Below are positions 11,721 to 53,396 of a DNA stretch of 64,000 bases, in pieces; position 1 is the first letter of the stretch; each line of letters starts with the position of its first letter. The stretch is taken from the IMG/VR virus record IMGVR_UViG_3300042923_000569, positions 186,001 through 250,000 of that record; one strand, written 5' to 3'. The notes beneath the pieces were generated by a model that saw nothing but the letters and a program-made list of their open reading frames with translations, searched no databases and had not been told where the DNA came from. The translations under genes and the position numbers were made by a program.

Positions 11721-12058
11721 CCTAAATGATAACGCCAGCCTTGTGAACCGAAAGAGTCATCAAGGTCACCAGCATTAAGAACATCGATCATAAATTCGAT
11801 TTCACCAGATACCATATCACCATCAACTGGAGTTCCAGCGGCAATAGCGTCTAGTACTTCAGGCGTTAACGAAGAATAGTTTACAAATAGGTCTTCTTCT
11901 TCTGCACCTTCATAATCGTGATAATCATTATCGTACTGTACTGTTAAATCATAAATGGTTCGCAAATCACGAATAAAAGAATCACGGTCTTCTACATTTC
12001 TGAAGACGCCATTAATTTCAATTTCGTGTTGAAGACTACCGAAGTTACGTTCACTCAT
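11711..12058 (-). CDS. hypothetical acidic protein
   Basis: 115-aa ORF. Confidence 0.7.
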   Translation of the reverse strand: MSERNFGSLQHEIEINGVFRNVEDRDSFIRDLRTIYDLTVQYDNDYHDYEGAEEEDLFVNYSSLTPEVLDAIAAGTPVDGDMVSGEIEFMIDVLNAGDLDDSFGSQGWRYHLGWE

Positions 12059-12318
12059 AGATATTTGTCCATCAAAAAGTCGAATAATTCTTTACTATTT
12101 TTACCAACATACCAGTCAACTAGTTCGTTTTCTTCGTCTTCATCTTCTGGGTGTTCGAAAATTTCAACATGGAAATGTCCCTTAAAATCAACACCAATAC
12201 CGAAGATAAGTTCACCACAAGTATTTTCTTCAATATCCTCTATCATAGAACAGATATAGTCGAATTGTTCTGATTCATTGGCATTAGTTGGAAATTTATA
12301 TTCAGTTGTGTTTTTCAT
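12055..12318 (-). CDS. hypothetical acidic protein
   Basis: 87-aa ORF. Confidence 0.7.
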   Translation of the reverse strand: MKNTTEYKFPTNANESEQFDYICSMIEDIEENTCGELIFGIGVDFKGHFHVEIFEHPEDEDEENELVDWYVGKNSKELFDFLMDKYL

Positions 12319-12477
12319 TACTCTTTCCTAATACTAGTAAAATGATAATAACAAGAAATGGAGAAATGATAAAACTGATAATAGCCCATAGTAAAAATGA
12401 ACGATTATTCTTTTCTGTAATACAGAACATCACGTAGTAAGTGATTAGTAGGATAATTACGTAAATTGCAGTTGCCA

Positions 12478-12741
12478 TTATTCTTTACCTACTGAAACAT
12501 GATGTAGTACTGCTACAGTTTTAAATTCTTCTTCAGAATTGCCATTCAGATCAACAATCTTAACTTTAAGACCGTCAAGTGAATTATTTGCGTGGTACTT
12601 TTCCATTAGTGCTACATCATGGGTATCCGAAACAATATCAACTGCTTCACCAGTACGTTCAGCAATGAACTTAGCAACTTCAACTGCTAGGGTTGTTTTA
12701 CCTGAATGTACTGTATCTGACGTAATATTAACTGTAATCAT
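12478..12741 (-). CDS. small protein with P-loop-like motif
   Basis: HSGKTT near the N terminus. Confidence 0.6.
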   Translation of the reverse strand: MITVNITSDTVHSGKTTLAVEVAKFIAERTGEAVDIVSDTHDVALMEKYHANNSLDGLKVKIVDLNGNSEEEFKTVAVLHHVSVGKE

Positions 12742-20023: not shown

Positions 20024-20318
20024 CCTTCTCTTGTATTGTCAAGAGAAATAGCTGAATTTCTTCGATTTTTATTTCGTTTGTGCATAAAAACGCCATTAAT
20101 TCAGGAAGTACATAAAACAACTTAGCGAACGAACTAATTTCAGATTGATTAAACGAGAATCCCATTGGTATAACACTGGAATTCCATACACCTTCGATTC
20201 TGTGCGATACTACTGCCATTATCACCCGATCACCGTACTCAACCGAAACATGCCGATAACCTGTCTGCTCATTCTCTTCCCAAAACATGTGGCTCGTTTT
20301 AAAAACCATACTTCTCAC
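20010..20318 (-). CDS. hypothetical protein
   Basis: ~100-aa ORF. Confidence 0.65.
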   Translation of the reverse strand: MRSMVFKTSHMFWEENEQTGYRHVSVEYGDRVIMAVVSHRIEGVWNSSVIPMGFSFNQSEISSFAKLFYVLPELMAFLCTNEIKIEEIQLFLLTIQEKVDSI

Positions 20319-20844
20319 CTAGTAGTTGTTTTAAGAGTTCAAAGTACGTCCTGTTCTTTGCGTGAGAACCCGGTGGCATCAAGCTACTGAATTCAGCAAA
20401 GTCATTACGTAAGATAGTATCACGAACGTTAGTACTTGAATAGGGATTATTTTCTCTAGGACCGGCACTAACTGTTTGAACTGTATCGAAATTGTACAAT
20501 TCTCCGTTATATTTGTGAAGCAGATCACCAAATTTACCAGACCTGTCGGACCCGCATAGCATGACAATATTACTATAAAGTGGATCTAATTCTTCCAAAA
20601 CACCAAATAACGTACTCGCATGATGTGGTTGAAAATACTTCATAATCCAGGGATAGTACTCTTCAATCATATCAATTTTAAAGTCATACGGTAATTGCTC
20701 TGAGTTAGTTACGTACAACTTAATTTCAGAATTTGGAATCGTTTGTTGTAGTATAAGTGCTTGTTGAAACATTTTTCCATGTCCCATATGAACCGGACTA
20801 AACTTACCATACATCATAATACATGTCTTTGGTGCAATGTTCAT
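20299..20844 (-). CDS. cytidylyltransferase-like (HIGH-motif) nucleotidyltransferase
   Basis: GKFSPVHMGH, CGSDR, SSTNVR. Confidence 0.75.
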   Translation of the reverse strand: MNIAPKTCIMMYGKFSPVHMGHGKMFQQALILQQTIPNSEIKLYVTNSEQLPYDFKIDMIEEYYPWIMKYFQPHHASTLFGVLEELDPLYSNIVMLCGSDRSGKFGDLLHKYNGELYNFDTVQTVSAGPRENNPYSSTNVRDTILRNDFAEFSSLMPPGSHAKNRTYFELLKQLLGEKYGF

Positions 20845-20849
20845 TGTTA

Positions 20850-21398
20850 TTACTCTAAGTCAATCCAAGGTTGCACTACAAAACCTATACTATGTAGTAC
20901 TTCTAGTTTCTCTTTAGTAATATTGTTATCATAGATAACTAACATACTTGGAAATGGTGCACCTGATTTTTTATGAGAACCATCTTCTCTCCATGAAGGA
21001 AGACTACGGTTATCAAACTTCAGACGACCTTTAACAAAACAAATAGCTTCCGCTGAACCTTGAATATAATTGTGAAAGTATCTTGTATCGGTTCTTGCTG
21101 GTGGCAATGCAACAATAGTAGTTCCATTTACACGGTGTTCTTCATCAAACTTTTTAAACCATTTACTGATTTCTCTTCCGTAAGGAGGATTACACCAGAC
21201 AGTTTCACCTTCCCATGAATGTGCAAGACCATCCGTTTCAGGTGTATAGTACTTCTCACATTTAGCAGTTTCATCCATTGCAGCAGGATCTAAAGTAAAG
21301 TTCCATACTGCGTTCAACCTCTGATAAAAATCATCAGGAGTATCCCACGTATTTGATGCTGAACTAAAATGAACTGATTTATTATTTTCTTCTTCCAT
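20850..21398 (-). CDS. phage DNA N6-adenine methyltransferase (T1/HP1 Dam-like family)
   Basis: WDTP, FTLDPAA, DGL..SW, WCNPPY, PARTDT, GRLKF, APFPS. Confidence 0.9.
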   Translation of the reverse strand: MEEENNKSVHFSSASNTWDTPDDFYQRLNAVWNFTLDPAAMDETAKCEKYYTPETDGLAHSWEGETVWCNPPYGREISKWFKKFDEEHRVNGTTIVALPPARTDTRYFHNYIQGSAEAICFVKGRLKFDNRSLPSWREDGSHKKSGAPFPSMLVIYDNNITKEKLEVLHSIGFVVQPWIDLE

Positions 21399-21410: not shown

Positions 21411-21935
21411 TTAAATTAATTGACAGTACTTCGTAATCTCGTCAAATTCAGAACTATATCGATCTGATTCAAAACAGAACCTGAAGTAATGACCGTACCT
21501 AGCCATTAAGTTAAACATTTCATCTTCCTGAAAGACGTAAAACTTAAATTCACTAGGTTCTTCTTTATAGCCAATAAAATTGATAATTTCATTTGTCACA
21601 TCTTTTCCATCGTAGTAGTACGTTCTGGATTCAAGATTTCCATTGATATCATATCTTTTATATTCACCATAGAGTTTGTTATTATGTTCAAAGTACTGAG
21701 AGCTGACTCGATTATTATTGTACCGGTTTTCTACATGTCCATAGTATTCAACTTTCTGAATGAGAGGTATTTTGGTGGGGCGATATGTTATAGTTGCAAG
21801 TACATTGTTCTGTTTGAACTCCGTAACTTTGCTTATTTTATTGTGGTCTATCTGAACACGATAGCCGATGAACTCATTCAAATCTACGGAATCTTTTACG
21901 ATTCCTGTTTTCTTACACTTGTACACGATTTTCAT
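21411..21935 (-). CDS. hypothetical protein with MORN-like segment
   Basis: GEYKRYDINGNLESRTYYYDG. Confidence 0.65.
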   Translation of the reverse strand: MKIVYKCKKTGIVKDSVDLNEFIGYRVQIDHNKISKVTEFKQNNVLATITYRPTKIPLIQKVEYYGHVENRYNNNRVSSQYFEHNNKLYGEYKRYDINGNLESRTYYYDGKDVTNEIINFIGYKEEPSEFKFYVFQEDEMFNLMARYGHYFRFCFESDRYSSEFDEITKYCQLI

Positions 21936-21944
21936 TTACATCTC

Positions 21945-22615
21945 ACGAATAGGAATCAGGATTATTTCTGATTCATTGATACAAGGAACATCCTACGGAC
22001 GTTCCAGTAAATCTCTTAACAGACTTCACTTACGTTACGTTCTGTAGAGATTTACATTTCTAACTTAAAAGGATTAATACGTTTAGTACTTTATACTGAC
22101 GAGATTTGTTGATGCAATTTCATCCCCCCAAAAGGAGGGAAGAATAAAGGTCTGACGATGATAGTCTTAGCTTTTCATGTCACGAATTTCAAATTGAGCG
22201 GAAGCGGGTTGTCCTGTTTCTCCCTATCGCGGTTCTATACAACGGTCGTAGTCTTACTACACTGATTCTAATAGCTACATGAACAGCTTTAGAATTGTCA
22301 AATTCAAGACGGATCTATATTGTACAAATCCAATCGCCAAATTTAACTCCCTTATACATTAGGTAGGTGCGATCCTATATGTCTATCTAGGCATGAACTT
22401 ATGTAGTACTGTCATGCTTTATACAGCCGCATTGCCGTGAGTGGTACAAACTATGCCAACATCTAACGGGTTTCTTTTGCTGTTCGTACTGAATGAACTA
22501 CTCATCTGGTGTTTACTTTTCAACATCATCAGGTCTTCAACTATCCTTGTTGTACAAGGTCATTCAGAGTTTTTCTCAATTAAAAAAGGACAACACCCAA
22601 AGTGCTGTCCTAGTA
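21945..22615. other. long hairpin-rich non-coding region (structured RNA or origin candidate)
   Basis: ~680 bp with no credible ORF in an otherwise packed genome; at least 8 inverted repeats. Confidence 0.5.
22582..22611 (-). terminator. intrinsic terminator
   Basis: AGGACAGCAC-TTTGG-GTGTTGTCCT then T run on the minus strand. Confidence 0.6.
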
Positions 22616-22633
22616 CTATTATACCACAAAAAA

Positions 22634-23455
22634 TTAAAACGTTTCATTTGTTAGCTGCATGATTTTAACACACAACTGCCGCATAAATTCAAAATTATTG
22701 TAGTTATATTCTTTCGTTGCATATACATCTTCATCATCATAACGGTAGAAATCAAAACACTTTTTAATATGGTCAACCGATACAGCAGTTTTGTGTATAA
22801 AATTTCGAGAATTATGTGGCACAAAATAAGTACTGAGATATGACATGATAGATGATTCATTCGAACTCAATTCAAACTCACACAATTTAAAAACAGATTC
22901 ATTGAACATAAAAGCTTTTTCATACTTTATATAAGGAATTAGTTCGTCGATAATATCCTGACGAAAAGCTTCTGGTACTTTAAACTCAAATACATCACTA
23001 TCATTTGTTGGGTGAGAAAAATCGAAAAACTCTTGACTTGATGGATTATTAGGTGCGTAATAAAATCCATTAGTACTCCAACCGCTGCTGGCATCACCGG
23101 TCATTGATGCATTAGATGCTCTCTGTGCCGTATTACCAAACCCAACTTCTTTAGATTCTAGATTATAAGTACAATAATTGTACTCAGTAACTCCTAATAA
23201 TTCCAACTGAAAAGTTATTTCATCTGGAATATTAACTGGGATTATTCTAGTACAATCATTAGTATTGGAGATGAATACATTGTTGCAACCAAACTTTGAA
23301 CTTAAGTTATGAACTATTGAGTAAAAAGATGTACTTATCTCTAATGGCTTTCGGAACGTACTGTGTGGGTTTGCTGGTGTCCCCATTCCACTTGCAGAAC
23401 CTATACTACCAGAACGATTGACATCGTGAAAAGTTATAAAAAAATTAACAAACAT
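22634..23455 (-). CDS. hypothetical protein
   Basis: 273-aa ORF; PDEITFQL resembles the FQ-family motif. Confidence 0.7.
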   Translation of the reverse strand: MFVNFFITFHDVNRSGSIGSASGMGTPANPHSTFRKPLEISTSFYSIVHNLSSKFGCNNVFISNTNDCTRIIPVNIPDEITFQLELLGVTEYNYCTYNLESKEVGFGNTAQRASNASMTGDASSGWSTNGFYYAPNNPSSQEFFDFSHPTNDSDVFEFKVPEAFRQDIIDELIPYIKYEKAFMFNESVFKLCEFELSSNESSIMSYLSTYFVPHNSRNFIHKTAVSVDHIKKCFDFYRYDDEDVYATKEYNYNNFEFMRQLCVKIMQLTNETF

Positions 23456-34575: not shown

Positions 34576-34681
34576 TTCGTTTACTCCGTTGCGTTTCCGA
34601 TGTAGTAATAATAGTACTTCTGAATGTTTAACGCAAGCCTTTTTTAAATTAAAAGTATAATTTTTTATTTGCTGTAGGGTA

Positions 34682-34758
34682 TTGACAGGCCACCAGCACT
34701 AAGGCATAATTAACACACAGACGGCGAAACGTCTTTGACCCATAGGGTGCGGAGCTAT
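34682..34758 (+). ncRNA. promoter-hairpin-CCCATAGGGTGC unit 1 (Chi in promoter spacer)
   Basis: TTGACA-17-CATAAT; AGACG-GCGAAA-CGTCT; motif at 34739-34750; no ORF downstream. Confidence 0.55.
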
Positions 34759-34795
34759 ATAAAAAATAAAAGTACTATCCAATAGATAGATCTAT

Positions 34796-34865
34796 GCACC
34801 CTATGGGCTTAGTGGCTGTATCTGCCAATGAGATAAGTATAGCAAAAAGGGCTGACCGAAGTCAA
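34796..34865 (-). ncRNA. promoter-hairpin-CCCATAGGGTGC unit 2
   Basis: TTGACT-18-TATACT; TGGC-AGATACA-GCCA; motif at 34796-34807. Confidence 0.55.
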
Positions 34866-34873
34866 CCCCTTTT
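34844..34873 (-). terminator. UUCG terminator with an embedded -35 box
   Basis: GGGGTTGAC-TTCG-GTCAGCCC-TTTTT. Confidence 0.7.
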
Positions 34874-34889
34874 ATGTAATTCTTTTTGG

Positions 34890-35060
34890 TTATGCTGGCT
34901 GGTGATCGTGACGGCCTTTAGTGTAGGCGTCCTCTAATTCTTTACGTTGCCAGGTATCGAGTGAGTTAAACAAAAGGCGGTTATCATTATCAACCGGGCG
35001 GTTGTTGGTTCCTAATTCGTACCAACGTACTTTCAACATTTCTAAATCTACTTGAACCAT
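34890..35060 (-). CDS. 56-aa protein, paralogue of 35156..35365
   Basis: MVQVDLEMLKVRWY...LFNSL...ELEDAYTKG; below the ORF-track cutoff; AAGGA RBS. Confidence 0.65.
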   Translation of the reverse strand: MVQVDLEMLKVRWYELGTNNRPVDNDNRLLFNSLDTWQRKELEDAYTKGRHDHQPA

Positions 35061-35155
35061 TTTGTACTATCCTTATGGACTCATTGTAACGATTATATAA
35101 TGTGGGTTATACTAAGTCAACCCTATTGATATTATTTTTTATTATGACTGGAATT

Positions 35156-44942: not shown

Positions 44943-45250
44943 GGCTGTATTCCTATCTCGTTTAAAGTAACTACATTATAAAGTACTTGATGACATATTA
45001 CAAGTACTTTTAATGTTTACTGATCCCAATAATTCTGTAAAGATTGATATGTGATTTTATATTGATTAGCCGCTAACATTAACGCATCAGTTTCTGTTTT
45101 CCCTTCCTGTTGCATAAGATGCCAGGCATAATCACTAGCTAATTCATAATCGGATGAATCAAACGCTTCTTCTCTCATATGTTGTTCCTTTCGTTTAAAG
45201 TAACTACATTATAAAGTACTCGCGAATATATGCAAGTACTGTTAATGTTT

Positions 45251-46919: not shown

Positions 46920-46925
46920 AGTAAT

Positions 46926-47348
46926 CCTCTCAATTAAAATTAACTACTCAATAAGTTTATTATATAGTACTCGCTTGTTATTGCAAGTACTATCGAACTA
47001 CTTATTATGATTATCATTGTACAGGCGATCACATAATCGCCCATGATAAACCCGCCCATTCTTTAAACGTTTACCCAAAGGCATAAACCATTTAAGATGG
47101 AAACCAGTAAGAAAGATTATATCTTTCATTCGGAAACTTCTACAGTCCAGCCTTTATAGGCGTCGATGTAATTGATCCAGTCCTGGTCATTCCAACGGGC
47201 AGTAGTTACACCAGGAGCTTTAAACTTGTAATGTCCAGCTTTATATGCTTCCATCTTAGTCATGTATCACCTCTCAATTAAAATTAACTACTCAATAAGT
47301 TTATTATATAGTACTCGCTTGTTATTGCAAGTACTATCGAACTACTTA
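46926..47348. repeat. 79-bp perfect direct repeat of a promoter/RBS cassette (46926-47004 and 47270-47348)
   Basis: identical CCTCTCAATTAAAATT...AGTACTATCGAACTACTTA copies. Confidence 0.85.
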
Positions 47349-48941: not shown

Positions 48942-49097
48942 TTTTAAATCCTCTCAATTAAAAGTAACATCGTCTCGTTTCGATATAGGTAATTATATAG
49001 TACTGGTAATCGAAAGCAAGTACTTTTTAAAATAAAAGTATAATTAAGAATCAAAAATAAATTTGCATCTAAAGAAAAATGATGATACGATGTTTAT

Positions 49098-49192
49098 GCG
49101 GCGAAAATGTGAGGTTCGCCGCAAGTCCAACGAATGATAACGCATTGTATTACTTTATAGGATAGCTATGGGTTTGCTATCCTTTTTTTTTT
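49098..49192 (+). ncRNA. candidate ~95-nt small RNA
   Basis: TTGCAT-17-TACGAT (extended -10) promoter; 8-bp 5' hairpin; unpaired core; AGGATAGC/GCTATCCT terminator plus a long T run; no ORF. Confidence 0.6.
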
Positions 49193-49207
49193 ATTTTCGA
49201 AAAGGTA

Positions 49208-49282
49208 TTGACTCCACCAGCCAAATAACCGATAATCACATCAAGACGGCGAAACGTCCTTTCCCATAGGGTGCGGAGCTAT
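49208..49282 (+). ncRNA. promoter-hairpin-CCCATAGGGTGC unit 8 (Chi in spacer)
   Basis: TTGACT-17-GATAAT; GACG-GCGAAA-CGTC; motif at 49263-49274. Confidence 0.55.
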
Positions 49283-49319
49283 GTCTTTAAAGTACTAATT
49301 TTCTTACGGGTATTCCTCT

Positions 49320-49387
49320 GCACCCTATGGGCTACGCCTTTGTCTCGGCTTGTATGTATTATTGCATTTTTCGGGGATTGAAGTCAA
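49320..49387 (-). ncRNA. promoter-hairpin-CCCATAGGGTGC unit 9
   Basis: TTGACT-18-AATAAT; GCC-GAGACAAA-GGC; motif at 49320-49331. Confidence 0.5.
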
Positions 49388-49405
49388 CCCCCGATTTGTA
49401 AAGAT

Positions 49406-51411: not shown

Positions 51412-51670
51412 GATATTACCCTCGAATTTTTTAAGTTAATTTGTTTGGCCTGATTGTTTCGGCTTGATTAAAATTTAAACTACTTGTTTCTTTCAGTCAA
51501 CTACTATTTTCAACTTTCAAGAAACTTTTTTTCTTTCTATCGTCTGGAGCATTTCGCCCTTTCGATAACCAACATCTTACACCATCCTTTCTAACTAGCA
51601 AGTACTTTTTAAAAACTTTTTTTCGTTCTATCCAAAAGAGAGTTTCTATCTTCAGGACTTGCTAGCCAGG

Positions 51671-51683
51671 TTGTTAAAGAGCG
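51671..51683 (-). promoter_or_regulatory. boxA antitermination element
   Basis: CGCTCTTTAACAA on the minus strand, ~20 nt past a TTGCAG-16-TACTAT promoter. Confidence 0.65.
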
Positions 51684-51941
51684 GTGTTCCGTGTTGATGT
51701 GGTAATAGTACACTAACCATAAAACTCTGCAAGCACTTTCTTATAAAAACTTATAACTTTTTTCATTCGTCGTTTTTCTTCCTTTATACGCGTAAAGAAA
51801 CCCACAACACATAGGAAGCATTTACAGCCCTTTAAAGTACTAATCTAAGTGTTTACCAGGCGTAATCCTCCAGCCTCTTATAGTGCGTCCTATGCGTTCC
51901 TATATAGAAGAAACTATTTTCAATCTTTTTAAAGAAAATGC

Positions 51942-52395: not shown

Positions 52396-53075
52396 TGTTG
52401 ATAGCAGATAGGGATAGTACACCCAAAATTTAAGTAAAGTACAACATCGATCTATCCATAATTCTTTGACTAGGATCATTACATCCTGAAATATACAATA
52501 CAAAAAATAATAGCACTTAGGATAGTTCCTGGTACTGTAAACATCTACAGCAGGAATTATATTAAGTGCTATCAACGTACTTCTAATGTATATTCTCAGT
52601 ACTAAAGATTCCTGAGAAAGCAGGGTGTCCAGTCAAGACAACTTCGTTACAACGTTACGAGGGGAATCTCGTATAGTACTGTTACAGTCGGGATTCACCT
52701 TCCTGGTTACTCTCTTCCGCAACATGGATATATCTTACCATATCTAATTTGCACGTCAAGTACTTTATTTTTAATTTCCCACATTCTAGTATTCCCTGGG
52801 ACTGTTGTTTTGTCCAGTGATATCACGCTTCGGTTATAAAATTTACACAACGTTCGAAGTACTTTAAATTTAAGAATATCCTGAAACTTTTTTGTACTTT
52901 TGATGATCCAGGAAAAATCTGATAGGTACTCCAAATTTTTTAGGATTCGTCTTTTTTCTAACGCACCAACCAAGTTTTTCCCATACCTCATTGTACCTTT
53001 TTTAAAAAAGGTCATTTGTACAAAATGTGCTATTTACATTCGACTTCAGGAAGAGATATAGCGGCAGGGGGTAAC

Positions 53076-53155
53076 AGTACTGTTATGATGTTCTTAGTAC
53101 TGTTACCATACTCTTAGTACTGTTATGATGTTCTTAGTACTATATCATTACTATT
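53076..53155. repeat. 4 x 20-bp tandem repeat, each unit starting with AGTACT
   Basis: AGTACT at 53076, 53096, 53116, 53136; units 1 and 3 identical. Confidence 0.85.
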
Positions 53156-53396
53156 AATTCTCTGCAATATTAAAGTACTTTAAACATAATCATAAACCTT
53201 CGTAAACGCAATATAAGCGTGTTTGAATCCTGTAGATATCGCTGTGCATATCTCCAGCAAGCAAACAGAAGCTCTCAGAGAGCGTCCTATGCGGTTATAG
53301 GGGGTATTTGGAGGGTATATTATGGTATAGTTCTTAGGTACTGAAATGTTGTATATAGGGTAAATACCTATAATATAATAATGGAGAGGGAAGATT

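Follow-up and report, generated by a model that had tools for sequence, protein, structure and literature searches.

The sequence analysed here, referred to below as the window, is a stretch of 64,000 nucleotides corresponding to bases 186,001-250,000 of a phage genome of 357,873 bp with direct terminal repeats. The nearest named relatives of this source phage are the Rak2-like jumbo myoviruses GAP32, XbC2, CBB, BF, fHe-Yen9-04 and PBECO4/121Q, and the majority of its genes lie on the minus strand. Two minus-strand ORFs, both members of phage families of unknown function, flank a gap that extends from the stop of ORF 22634..23455 to the start of ORF 21411..21935 and has no ORF of 40 aa or more on the gene (minus) strand. 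An initial annotation, made from the sequence alone, had described this as the only large gap in 33 kb of packed genes. The claim holds for window positions 1-34,600, where no other stretch of 300 nt or more lacks a long ORF; five further gaps of this size occur from 34.6 to 53.4 kb.

The gap is one copy, of a type that we call A, of a conserved cassette of about 700 bp read on the minus strand. From 5' to 3' on this strand, the cassette is made of a promoter, a terminator-like hairpin (types A and D), a region named RNA1, a direct repeat (DR1), an intrinsic terminator (types C, D and E only), a C-run/G-run hairpin, a second direct repeat (DR2) and a smaller structured module, part 2 (Table 1). 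RNA positions are numbered such that position p corresponds to window position 22618-p.

The local features listed by the initial annotation were confirmed. Its inverted repeats at 21953-74, 22007-55, 22265-95, 22391-417 and 22545-59 were recovered exactly, and two others held by direct reading of the sequence: GGAAC..GTTCC at 21985-22005, and TCCC/GGGA at 22123-40, the latter forming the conserved C-run/G-run hairpin. The minus-strand promoter element that it placed at about 22620, facing the gap, also held. The region was said to be packed with hairpins; these are present, but their density is not above chance (z = -1.49). The suggestion of a large structured non-coding RNA is strongly supported, the hairpins at 22545-59, 22391-417 and 22265-95 corresponding to helices P1a, P5 and P7. 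Long-range helices and pseudoknots were absent from that annotation.

Table 1. Features of the cassette copy located in the gap, in window coordinates
Feature	Position	Strand	Remarks
Non-coding gap	21936-22633		698 nt, between minus-strand ORFs 22634..23455 and 21411..21935
Whole promoter	22618..22646	minus	TGAAAC box, 17-nt spacer with extended -10 TGTGG, then TATAAT at 22618-22623
TGAAAC box	22641-22646	minus	inside 3' end of upstream ORF
TGTGGTATAAT promoter element	22618-22628	minus	promoter scan
Terminator-like hairpin and U6	22581..22611	minus	11-bp stem and T-run, directly 3' of -10 box
RNA1 core	22151..22567	minus	P1 5' strand to DR1; whole RNA about 450 nt
Helix P1	22560-67/22489-96	minus	covariation scans
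Helix P1a	22545-59	minus	sequence variable, hairpin still formed in most copies
Helix P2	22508-27	minus	covariation scans
Helix P3	22479-83/22423-27	minus	covariation scans
Helix P4	22466-69/22435-38	minus	
Helix P5	22391-22417	minus	compensatory changes in alignment
Helix P7	22265-95	minus	compensatory changes in alignment
Helix P8	22248-60	minus	
Pseudoknot PK2 (P9)	22208..22243	minus	GUUGY 22239-22243 with RCAAC 22208-22212 in P11 loop
Helix P10	22227-31/22181-85	minus	covariation, RNAalifold
Helix P11	22220-24/22200-04	minus	covariation, RNAalifold
Helix P12	22189-97	minus	covariation scans
Pseudoknot PK1	22174..22283	minus	pairing of P7 loop, 22277-22283, with the 7 nt that immediately follow P10, 22174-22180
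DR1	22152..22165	minus	consensus A-Y-C-A-N-Y-GUCA-R, end of RNA1
C-run/G-run hairpin	22124..22139	minus	conserved, between DR1 and DR2
DR2	22096..22109	minus	consensus A-Y-C-N-Y-GUCA-R, 56 nt downstream of DR1
Part 2	21936..22095	minus	smaller structured module, then start of ORF 21411..21935
Part 2 hairpin with conserved loop motif	22007-22055	minus	GAACG..GUGA loop
Part 2 covarying hairpin	21985-22005	minus	
Part 2 type A hairpin	21953-21974	minus	specific to type A

A large pseudoknotted RNA

We aligned 72 non-identical homologues of RNA1 (median pairwise identity 62%) using MAFFT (E-INS-i) and counted covariation with custom scans, rather than with R-scape. As a control, the pairing partner of each helix was displaced by one or two columns. 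Helices P1, P2, P3, P5, P7b, P9, P10, P11 and P12, together with PK1, show 87-100% canonical pairs, versus 17-64% in the shifted controls. At least 10 helices of RNA1 have compensatory changes, and most base pairs of the tested helices show double changes. When RNAalifold is applied to the 3' domain of the 72 sequences, eight of the ten pairs in P10 and P11 are each supported by 13-40 compensatory sequences; one of the remaining pairs has a single double change and the other is invariant. Only a single pair is broken in P10/P11, in a single sequence.

Both pseudoknots are supported in the same way. PK1 is a perfect Watson-Crick 7-mer in 70 of the 72 sequences, yet 12 distinct 7-mer pairs are used; its canonical pairing reaches 97%, versus 20-39% with shifted partners, and its sequence is identical between orthologous copies of different genera. 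PK2, which crosses P10 and P11, has 100% canonical pairs, with double changes at three of five. Numerous nucleotides left unpaired in RNA1 are invariant.

Taken singly, RNA1 of the gap copy is not more stable than chance: its minimum free energy is -117.8 kcal/mol against -108.7 +/- 6.1 for shuffled sequences (z = -1.49), a stability equalled by 10 of 100 shuffles. The significance of the structure thus rests on conservation and covariation across the 72 homologues and not on the folding of any one sequence. The choice of the minus strand is based on three observations: G-U pairs are frequent in minus-strand sense only (GU:44 at one P11 pair), the promoter is conserved, and part 2 folds better in sense. 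Comparing sense and antisense free energies over whole RNA1 was uninformative (25 of 54 cassettes).

Conserved secondary structure backed by compensatory changes across homologues is what is generally expected of a structured non-coding RNA, and RNA1 fulfills this. There is very little doubt in our view that the gap contains a gene for a large, pseudoknotted structured RNA, an inference drawn from comparative sequence analysis with no transcript data.

We could not assign this RNA to any family. Rfam 15, whose families include RNase P, tmRNA, 6S, group I/II introns and self-cleaving ribozymes, gave no match at gathering score over the whole window, and a search of the window and five paralogues at E up to 10 returned only scattered, sub-threshold matches to unrelated sRNA and miRNA models, none of them recurrent. 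The GOLLD, ROOL and OLE covariance models have no match even at E up to 10, and ARAGORN detected no tRNA or tmRNA. Of the checks proposed in the initial annotation, the Rfam scan thus yielded no family and the covariation analysis, through our own counts, yielded strong support. No conserved ORF is present in the cassettes, the median longest sense ORF being 36 aa, and the small ORFs annotated in homologous regions of several GenBank records are likely spurious. As no description of the element was found in the literature searched, RNA1 very probably represents a family that has no Rfam match and has not been described in any literature we could find.

Promoter and 5' end

A promoter combining the TGAAAC box and TGTGGTATAAT is present before every cassette copy. 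The source genome has about 35 promoters of the TGAAAC class, five of which precede cassettes; the same class has been noted, as a divergent RpoD-like promoter, in CBB and GAP32 (PMC5259590). The terminator-like hairpin that follows the -10 box is likely the terminator of the upstream operon, and would form the 5' end of the RNA. It is kept in cassette types A and D, and orthologous hairpins differ in sequence.

Direct repeats and downstream module

DR1 and DR2 are direct repeats of 10-14 nt that flank the C-run/G-run hairpin. Across 30 haplotypes, the two Y positions of the consensus are always equal in DR1 and DR2 and the R position is mostly so, while the variants themselves differ among cassettes within one genome. 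In a pair of near-identical Serratia island cassettes, a GUCA-to-GACA change is present in both repeats. No consistent complement to the repeats was found within the cassette, either by an alignment scan or by a per-sequence 10-mer search allowing G-U pairs; a weak UGAC/GUCA 4-mer was the only complementarity seen. Since the repeats co-vary within cassettes and lack a complementary partner there, the constraint acting on them is likely one of identity within the cassette, rather than complementarity, although this too is inferred from sequence alone. A single genome-wide protein specificity fails to explain such identity; a strand made at DR1 and re-pairing at DR2 would explain it.

The stem of the C-run/G-run hairpin covaries between two Serratia islands. 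An intrinsic terminator lies just upstream of this hairpin in types C, D and E and is absent from type A, the gap copy. We considered a second promoter after DR2 and rejected it: the promoter scan was negative, and the TATAAA present there is conserved neither in the islands nor in other genera. For the latter reason, DR2 is probably not a promoter spacer.

Part 2 contains two covarying hairpins, one of which carries the GAACG..GUGA loop motif. Its sense fold is better than its antisense fold in 50 of 54 cassettes (Wilcoxon p = 1.3e-9). No long-range helices were found between RNA1 and part 2. The DNA located beyond the terminator is conserved to the same degree as the RNA.

Multiple copies in jumbo phages

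DNA matching the non-coding interval, with an identity of 74-86%, is present in 62 phage records, at three to five places in each. In Asteriusvirus and Munch-like phages, the alignment is limited to the non-coding core and flanking genes no longer align. The source phage has five cassettes, at about 64, 149, 208 (the gap copy), 257 and 338 kb, all on the minus strand and each occupying its own ORF-free gap of about 700 bp. Consecutive copies are 49-85 kb apart; their minimum spacing of 48.9 kb has P = 0.01 when compared with five random points. Copies are found at syntenic positions in nine other phages, and the even spacing amounts to a single evolutionary observation. RaK2 has three copies, unevenly spaced (184, 88 and 73 kb).

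Every Rak2-like jumbo phage tested carries three to five cassettes. A covariance model, limited to the 3' domain and not covering the full RNA, retrieves five copies in the source phage, four in PBECO4 and three each in RaK2 and K64-1; the PA5oct genome has no match to this 3'-domain model. A strict motif scan of IMG/VR produced matches only in genomes of 350-380 kb or fragments.

Four of the five source-phage copies head long minus-strand gene arrays in sense orientation. The genes downstream of the five copies are unrelated, with no family in common, and no recombinase gene adjoins the phage copies. The type-C copy keeps the genome-wide orientation despite opposite-strand neighbours: in GAP32 and UE-S1 it has opposite-strand genes on both sides, and the UE-S1 copy ends in an annotated terminator. 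Opposite-strand flanks and a terminator of its own argue that the cassette is an autonomous unit, not a leader. The GenBank record of UE-S1 labels 158 bp of one copy with a bare 'repeat_region'.

Cassettes in bacterial islands

A motif scan of species-representative genomes revealed the complete cassette in seven enterobacterial assemblies, including the closed chromosome of Serratia fonticola GTA-SR07. The hosts are Serratia, Enterobacter, Buttiauxella and E. coli, with one cassette per genome. These copies retain the promoter, every helix, PK1, both direct repeats, the C/G hairpin and part 2, and their RNA fold is likewise maintained by compensatory changes. The island form is rare, since only 2 of 5,426 complete E. 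coli genomes carry a cassette; no additional copy turned up among 151 enterobacterial species genomes sampled at the family level. Pattern matches in Opitutus and Planctomycetota MAGs were dismissed as chance (no model match, GC 0.57-0.67).

At six of eight bacterial loci examined, the cassette is at the edge of an island, where it closely follows a recombinase gene of the same orientation. The islands span 8-19 kb and have a GC content of 0.31-0.38, compared with 0.54-0.60 for the chromosome. Their recombinases come from unrelated families, some islands having a tyrosine integrase and others a large serine recombinase. The cassette is often followed by a convergent cI/LexA-like S24 repressor and then by defence cargo; in three islands (L144, L152 and L145) it is directed at the 3' end of the convergent cI-like gene. 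The defence cargo includes complete Kiwa (KwaA and KwaB), DUF4238, RmrT-like and HNH proteins. In the two islands scanned, Pfam detected no replication or packaging genes among ORFs of 90 aa or more. As the island proteins were compared with Pfam and PADLOC alone, an initiator of a novel kind may have escaped notice. Terminal integrase, repressor, atypical GC, chromosomal insertion and defence cargo match the layout of phage satellites, or phage-inducible islands.

The cassette is the sole DNA common to islands and phages. In one group of islands, it shares 85% identity with the type-C copy found in an uncultured jumbo phage, a copy that adjoins genes for a late sigma factor, gp46/47 and endonuclease VII. 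As the island copies have a promoter of the phage type, they would be expected to fire on infection.

Possible functions

The reading we favour, tentatively and with the balance still tilting slightly against it, is that the cassette is a cis-acting, RNA-primed replication-origin unit that has been pirated by islands. No expression or replication data are available for this. In this view, host RNA polymerase, redirected to the phage TGAAAC promoters, would transcribe the structured RNA. Through its fold and the G-run region, this transcript would then either stay on its template or be processed, to give a leading-strand primer. Thanks to the identical repeats, an RNA bearing the DR1 sequence could anneal again to the template strand at DR2. 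The 358-kb genome would be served by several origins of this kind, and islands in which no replication genes were found would carry the cassette in order to be amplified, and possibly mobilised, by an infecting Rak2-like phage. We favour an origin because one idea covers the dispersed, co-oriented copies, the conservation past the terminator, the identical repeats and the capture by islands. There are precedents: relatives of T4 fire several promoter-driven R-loop origins (PMC3016281), and jumbo phages mobilise islands made of an integrase and defence genes (PMC12595487). An R-loop origin of the T4 type calls for a phage-activator-type promoter directed into the element; the conserved TGAAAC box plus TGTGGTATAAT may be such a promoter, the factor that recognizes the box and the timing of this recognition being undetermined.

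Several points weigh against an origin. The R-loop origins of T4 do not depend on any specific sequence or fold in their RNA (PMC3016281), and cassettes of types C, D and E have an intrinsic terminator between RNA1 and the region of the G-run and DR2. To our knowledge, there is no precedent for a doubly pseudoknotted primer RNA of 450 nt. Folds of this sort are commoner in ribozymes or RNP scaffolds. The even spacing, a single evolutionary observation that does not extend to the three RaK2 copies, also weakens the case. A replication origin was also one of the two inferences of the initial annotation; it is neither shown nor excluded here, and we retain it on evidence that lay outside that reader's view, namely the copies, the direct repeats and the island capture. 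The GAAGCGG heptamer, cited there as the core of a PriA-type site, is unsupported: at 22200-22206 on the plus strand, it complements the P11 3' strand and adjacent bases, a conserved part of the RNA that covaries with the P11 5' strand, and nothing marks it as a site in its own right. The proposed GC-skew analysis was run and shows no inflection at any copy, but skew is uninformative about origins here, as it tracks gene orientation and transcription.

The closest competitor is a stable trans-acting RNA, which we consider possible and barely behind the origin in plausibility. RNA1 would be released and, during infection, would act at a distance from its locus, whether in catalysis as a ribozyme, in the scaffolding of an RNP or as an 'ornate' RNA that assembles with itself; its multiple copies would provide dosage or sub-functionalised paralogues, and islands would express a look-alike, to jam the phage as a decoy or to recruit the same partner. 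The elaborate pseudoknotted core with its many invariant unpaired nucleotides speaks for this view, as do the stand-alone type-C copy with its own promoter and terminator between opposite-strand genes, the sameness of PK1 in orthologous copies across genera, and the island copies that keep the fold by compensatory changes and have the phage-type promoter. However, a trans-acting RNA leaves unexplained both the identity of the direct repeats within each cassette, in spite of their difference between cassettes, and the strong conservation past the terminator; no protein gene is conserved in the neighbourhood, and the island decoy idea is ad hoc. A cis-regulatory leader appears unlikely. Here the RNA would modify polymerase, in the manner of HK022 put/EAR-like antitermination, or act on transcript processing or stability, for the benefit of the downstream array. 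This would fit the four of five copies placed in sense at the head of long minus-strand arrays, the terminators found after the promoter (A, D) or after RNA1 (C, D, E), through which a modified polymerase could read, and the fact that type A and B transcripts would enter the next gene. On the other hand, put and EAR elements are leaders in the same orientation as their operon, which does not hold for the type-C copy, convergent with its neighbours and ending in its own terminator; the cassette is convergent with the cI-like gene in islands L144, L152 and L145; and the downstream genes have no common family. Known antitermination RNAs are also far smaller (roughly 65-120 nt), which again counts against a leader.

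Two further explanations can largely be set aside. That the cassette is a non-autonomous mobile unit, either MITE-like or an RNA belonging to a recombinase system, with the direct repeats as recombination cores, is suggested by its multiple copies, its presence in both phages and integrative islands, the recombinase gene adjoining it at six of the eight bacterial loci examined, and the resemblance of identity-constrained repeats to crossover cores. We hold it to be very unlikely: the copies occupy orthologous positions in different genera, which makes them ancient rather than mobile in recent times, the island recombinases come from unrelated families and none lies beside phage copies, and there are no terminal inverted repeats. 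The last alternative, a DNA-only signal or chance (cruciforms, protein sites, a mere spacer with terminator and promoters, or small proteins), is all but ruled out. It could invoke the folding of the single sequence, no better than that of shuffles, and, for its coding variant, the small ORFs that some GenBank records annotate in homologous regions. Against it stand the covarying long-range helices and pseudoknots, G-U pairs frequent on one strand only, the lack of a conserved ORF, and a DNA identity of 74-86% that persists where neighbouring genes have diverged beyond alignment. 

A bolder version of the RNA-primed origin, less likely than not, is also possible: the cassette may be the handle of a hitherto unseen satellite-helper system, in which the islands would have copied the origin of the Rak2-like phages and would be amplified, and perhaps transduced, on infection by such a phage.

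Relationship to known systems

The T4 origins oriF (uvsY) and oriG (gene 34) resemble the cassette in being several per genome, in belonging to a myovirus that is T4-related and in having A+T-rich DNA downstream (PMC3016281). Each also starts, as the cassette may do, with a phage-specific promoter in which an unusual upstream box is joined to a -10 element of the sigma-70 type (Kreuzer & Brister 2010, PMC3016281). The T4 origin transcript serves in cis as leading-strand primer (PMC3016281). However, T4 origins measure about 100 bp, have little sequence in common and require no RNA fold (PMC3016281), whereas the cassette, whose origin activity remains hypothetical, has about 700 bp conserved across genera and a pseudoknotted RNA of 450 nt. 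Another comparison is with ColE1. RNA II of this plasmid is a structured RNA of roughly 500 nt with a promoter far upstream of the start site, in which RNA folding and a G-run govern the formation of a persistent hybrid without any initiator protein encoded by the element. A scheme of this kind, requiring no initiator, would suit islands in which no Rep gene was found. Unlike ColE1, the cassette gives no sign of an antisense RNA I; the two have no sequence similarity, and RNA II forms simple stem-loops, not pseudoknots.

Among large structured RNAs, GOLLD, ROOL and OLE belong to the same 450-700-nt class as RNA1, with many covarying helices, pseudoknots and invariant unpaired nucleotides (bioRxiv 10.1101/2024.12.08.627333). 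As for RNA1, their biochemical function is unknown, and GOLLD and ROOL are phage-associated. RNA1 differs from all three in being multi-copy and dispersed, in having its own promoter class and co-varying direct repeats, and in being shared with host islands. Another RNA of similar length is ncRNA002 of PA5oct, a phage related to the Rak2-like group: this is a 450-nt, highly transcribed lncRNA defined by RNA-seq (PMC7318152). Its locus gave nothing better than E = 8 by nhmmer and is not homologous.

The islands themselves find a parallel in the Pseudomonas island I55 and phage JPTI55, which likewise associate an integrase and defence cargo, without genes for autonomous transfer, with a jumbo phage (PMC12595487, PMC12772148). 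That system involves another host, another phage lineage and islands of 20-70 kb, compared with 8-19 kb here, and the main text of PMC12595487 reports no non-coding module common to island and phage. By analogy with I55/JPTI55, we may hypothesize that the enterobacterial islands are mobilised by a jumbo phage.

Implications

Few non-coding RNAs are both large and pseudoknotted, and with each class discovered, new biochemistry has tended to come to light. The RNA described here is unusually amenable to study. It is conserved across cultured, therapy-relevant jumbo phages, including GAP32, CBB, PBECO4/121Q, RaK2, K64-1, phAPEC6 and others, and genetic analysis is therefore feasible. With three to five paralogues per genome, natural covariation already suffices for a detailed fold. 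Another outcome is the correction of annotations, as several GenBank records place hypothetical proteins inside the cassette.

That the same cassette occurs in bacterial defence islands hints at a direct interaction between phage and island. If the trans-acting reading is true, RNA1 would represent a new class of ornate RNA with ready hosts. If the origin reading is true, the cassette would answer the question of how T4-like genomes of 350 kb begin replication, and would show how islands without any replication genes that we could find exploit jumbo phages. Should the bolder reading prove right, we would be dealing with a new kind of origin, combining a pseudoknotted primer RNA with identity-constrained repeats, and with the first defined cis element by which satellites are tied to their jumbo phage.

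Promoter class and start-site terminator

The TGAAAC promoter of the type-A cassette, the minus-strand copy in the window, belongs to a class with about 35 members in the phage genome: TGAAAC, 17 nt, then TATAAT with an extended -10 TGTGG. These promoters are dispersed genome-wide, nearly all on the minus strand, and their shared class suggests a phage factor recognizing the TGAAAC box. In types A and D, a hairpin with a U-run, resembling an intrinsic terminator, follows immediately after the -10 box and is kept across genera. Because it abuts the -10 box, transcripts from either promoter would start with a terminator.

A possibly movable motif and variable repeats

In type A, a sub-module of about 25 nt, UACAAUAUAGAUCCGUC then AAAUUU, occupies a central position in RNA1; in types D and E it lies within the insertion of the covarying helix P12, and bacterial cassettes carry it at both sites. 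It resembles a movable structural motif. The direct repeats, spaced 56 nt apart in type A, change together inside each cassette, and their sequences vary between cassettes of one genome. No complement to DR1 or DR2 was found inside the cassette.

Annotation and genomic surroundings

Several GenBank records place small 'hypothetical protein' CDSs within homologous cassettes: g047/g048 in LT960551, GAP32_503A in JN882285, RaK2_00245 in JQ513383 and three in PQ464595 (Kaldavass). None of these is conserved as an ORF, and they are likely mis-annotations. In ON568341 (UE-S1), 158 bp are labelled as a bare repeat_region. The RNA-seq-defined 450-nt lncRNA ncRNA002 of PA5oct, a related jumbo phage, is similar in size to RNA1. 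It resembles the cassette RNA family neither in sequence nor by model.

The second half of the window contains six more stretches without a long ORF, 300-500 nt each; none has a cassette match. Genes downstream of types A and E are included in the table.

Coordinates of features (L, locus; L005, type E; L129, PA5oct; other L numbers, enterobacterial)
Feature	Position	Strand
TGAAAC promoter	window 22618-22646	-
TGAAAC promoter	window 25679 (genome 211679)	-
TGAAAC promoter	window 30954 (genome 216954)	-
Terminator-like hairpin, type A	window 22581-22611	-
Sub-module, type A	window ~22300-22325	-
Direct repeats, type A	window 22152-22165, 22096-22109	-
Dam-type N6-adenine methyltransferase and cytidylyltransferase-like genes	window 20299-21398	-
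ADP-ribosylglycohydrolase gene	L005 32-967	-
ncRNA002	L129 1452-1902	
No long ORF	window 34661-35155	
No long ORF	window 44943-45250	
No long ORF	window 46920-47345	
No long ORF	window 48942-49405	
No long ORF	window 51412-51882	
No long ORF	window 53016-53396	
Complete cassette	L146 6197-6983	+
Complete cassette	L149 3561-4273	-
Complete cassette	L144 2735-3519	+
Complete cassette	L152 2361-3147	-
Complete cassette	L147 5277-6032	+
Complete cassette	L145 6365-7124	+
Complete cassette	L156 ~11900-12700	+

Cassettes in bacterial islands

Whole cassettes, one per genome, also occur in the chromosomes of enterobacteria (Serratia, Enterobacter, Buttiauxella, RIT714 and E. coli LR-29-1). Their setting is small, low-GC integrative islands, where the cassette usually lies directly 3' of an integrase or large serine recombinase gene. 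Downstream lie a cI-like repressor and defence genes, Kiwa among them. We may hypothesize that these islands are satellites of Rak2-like jumbo phages.
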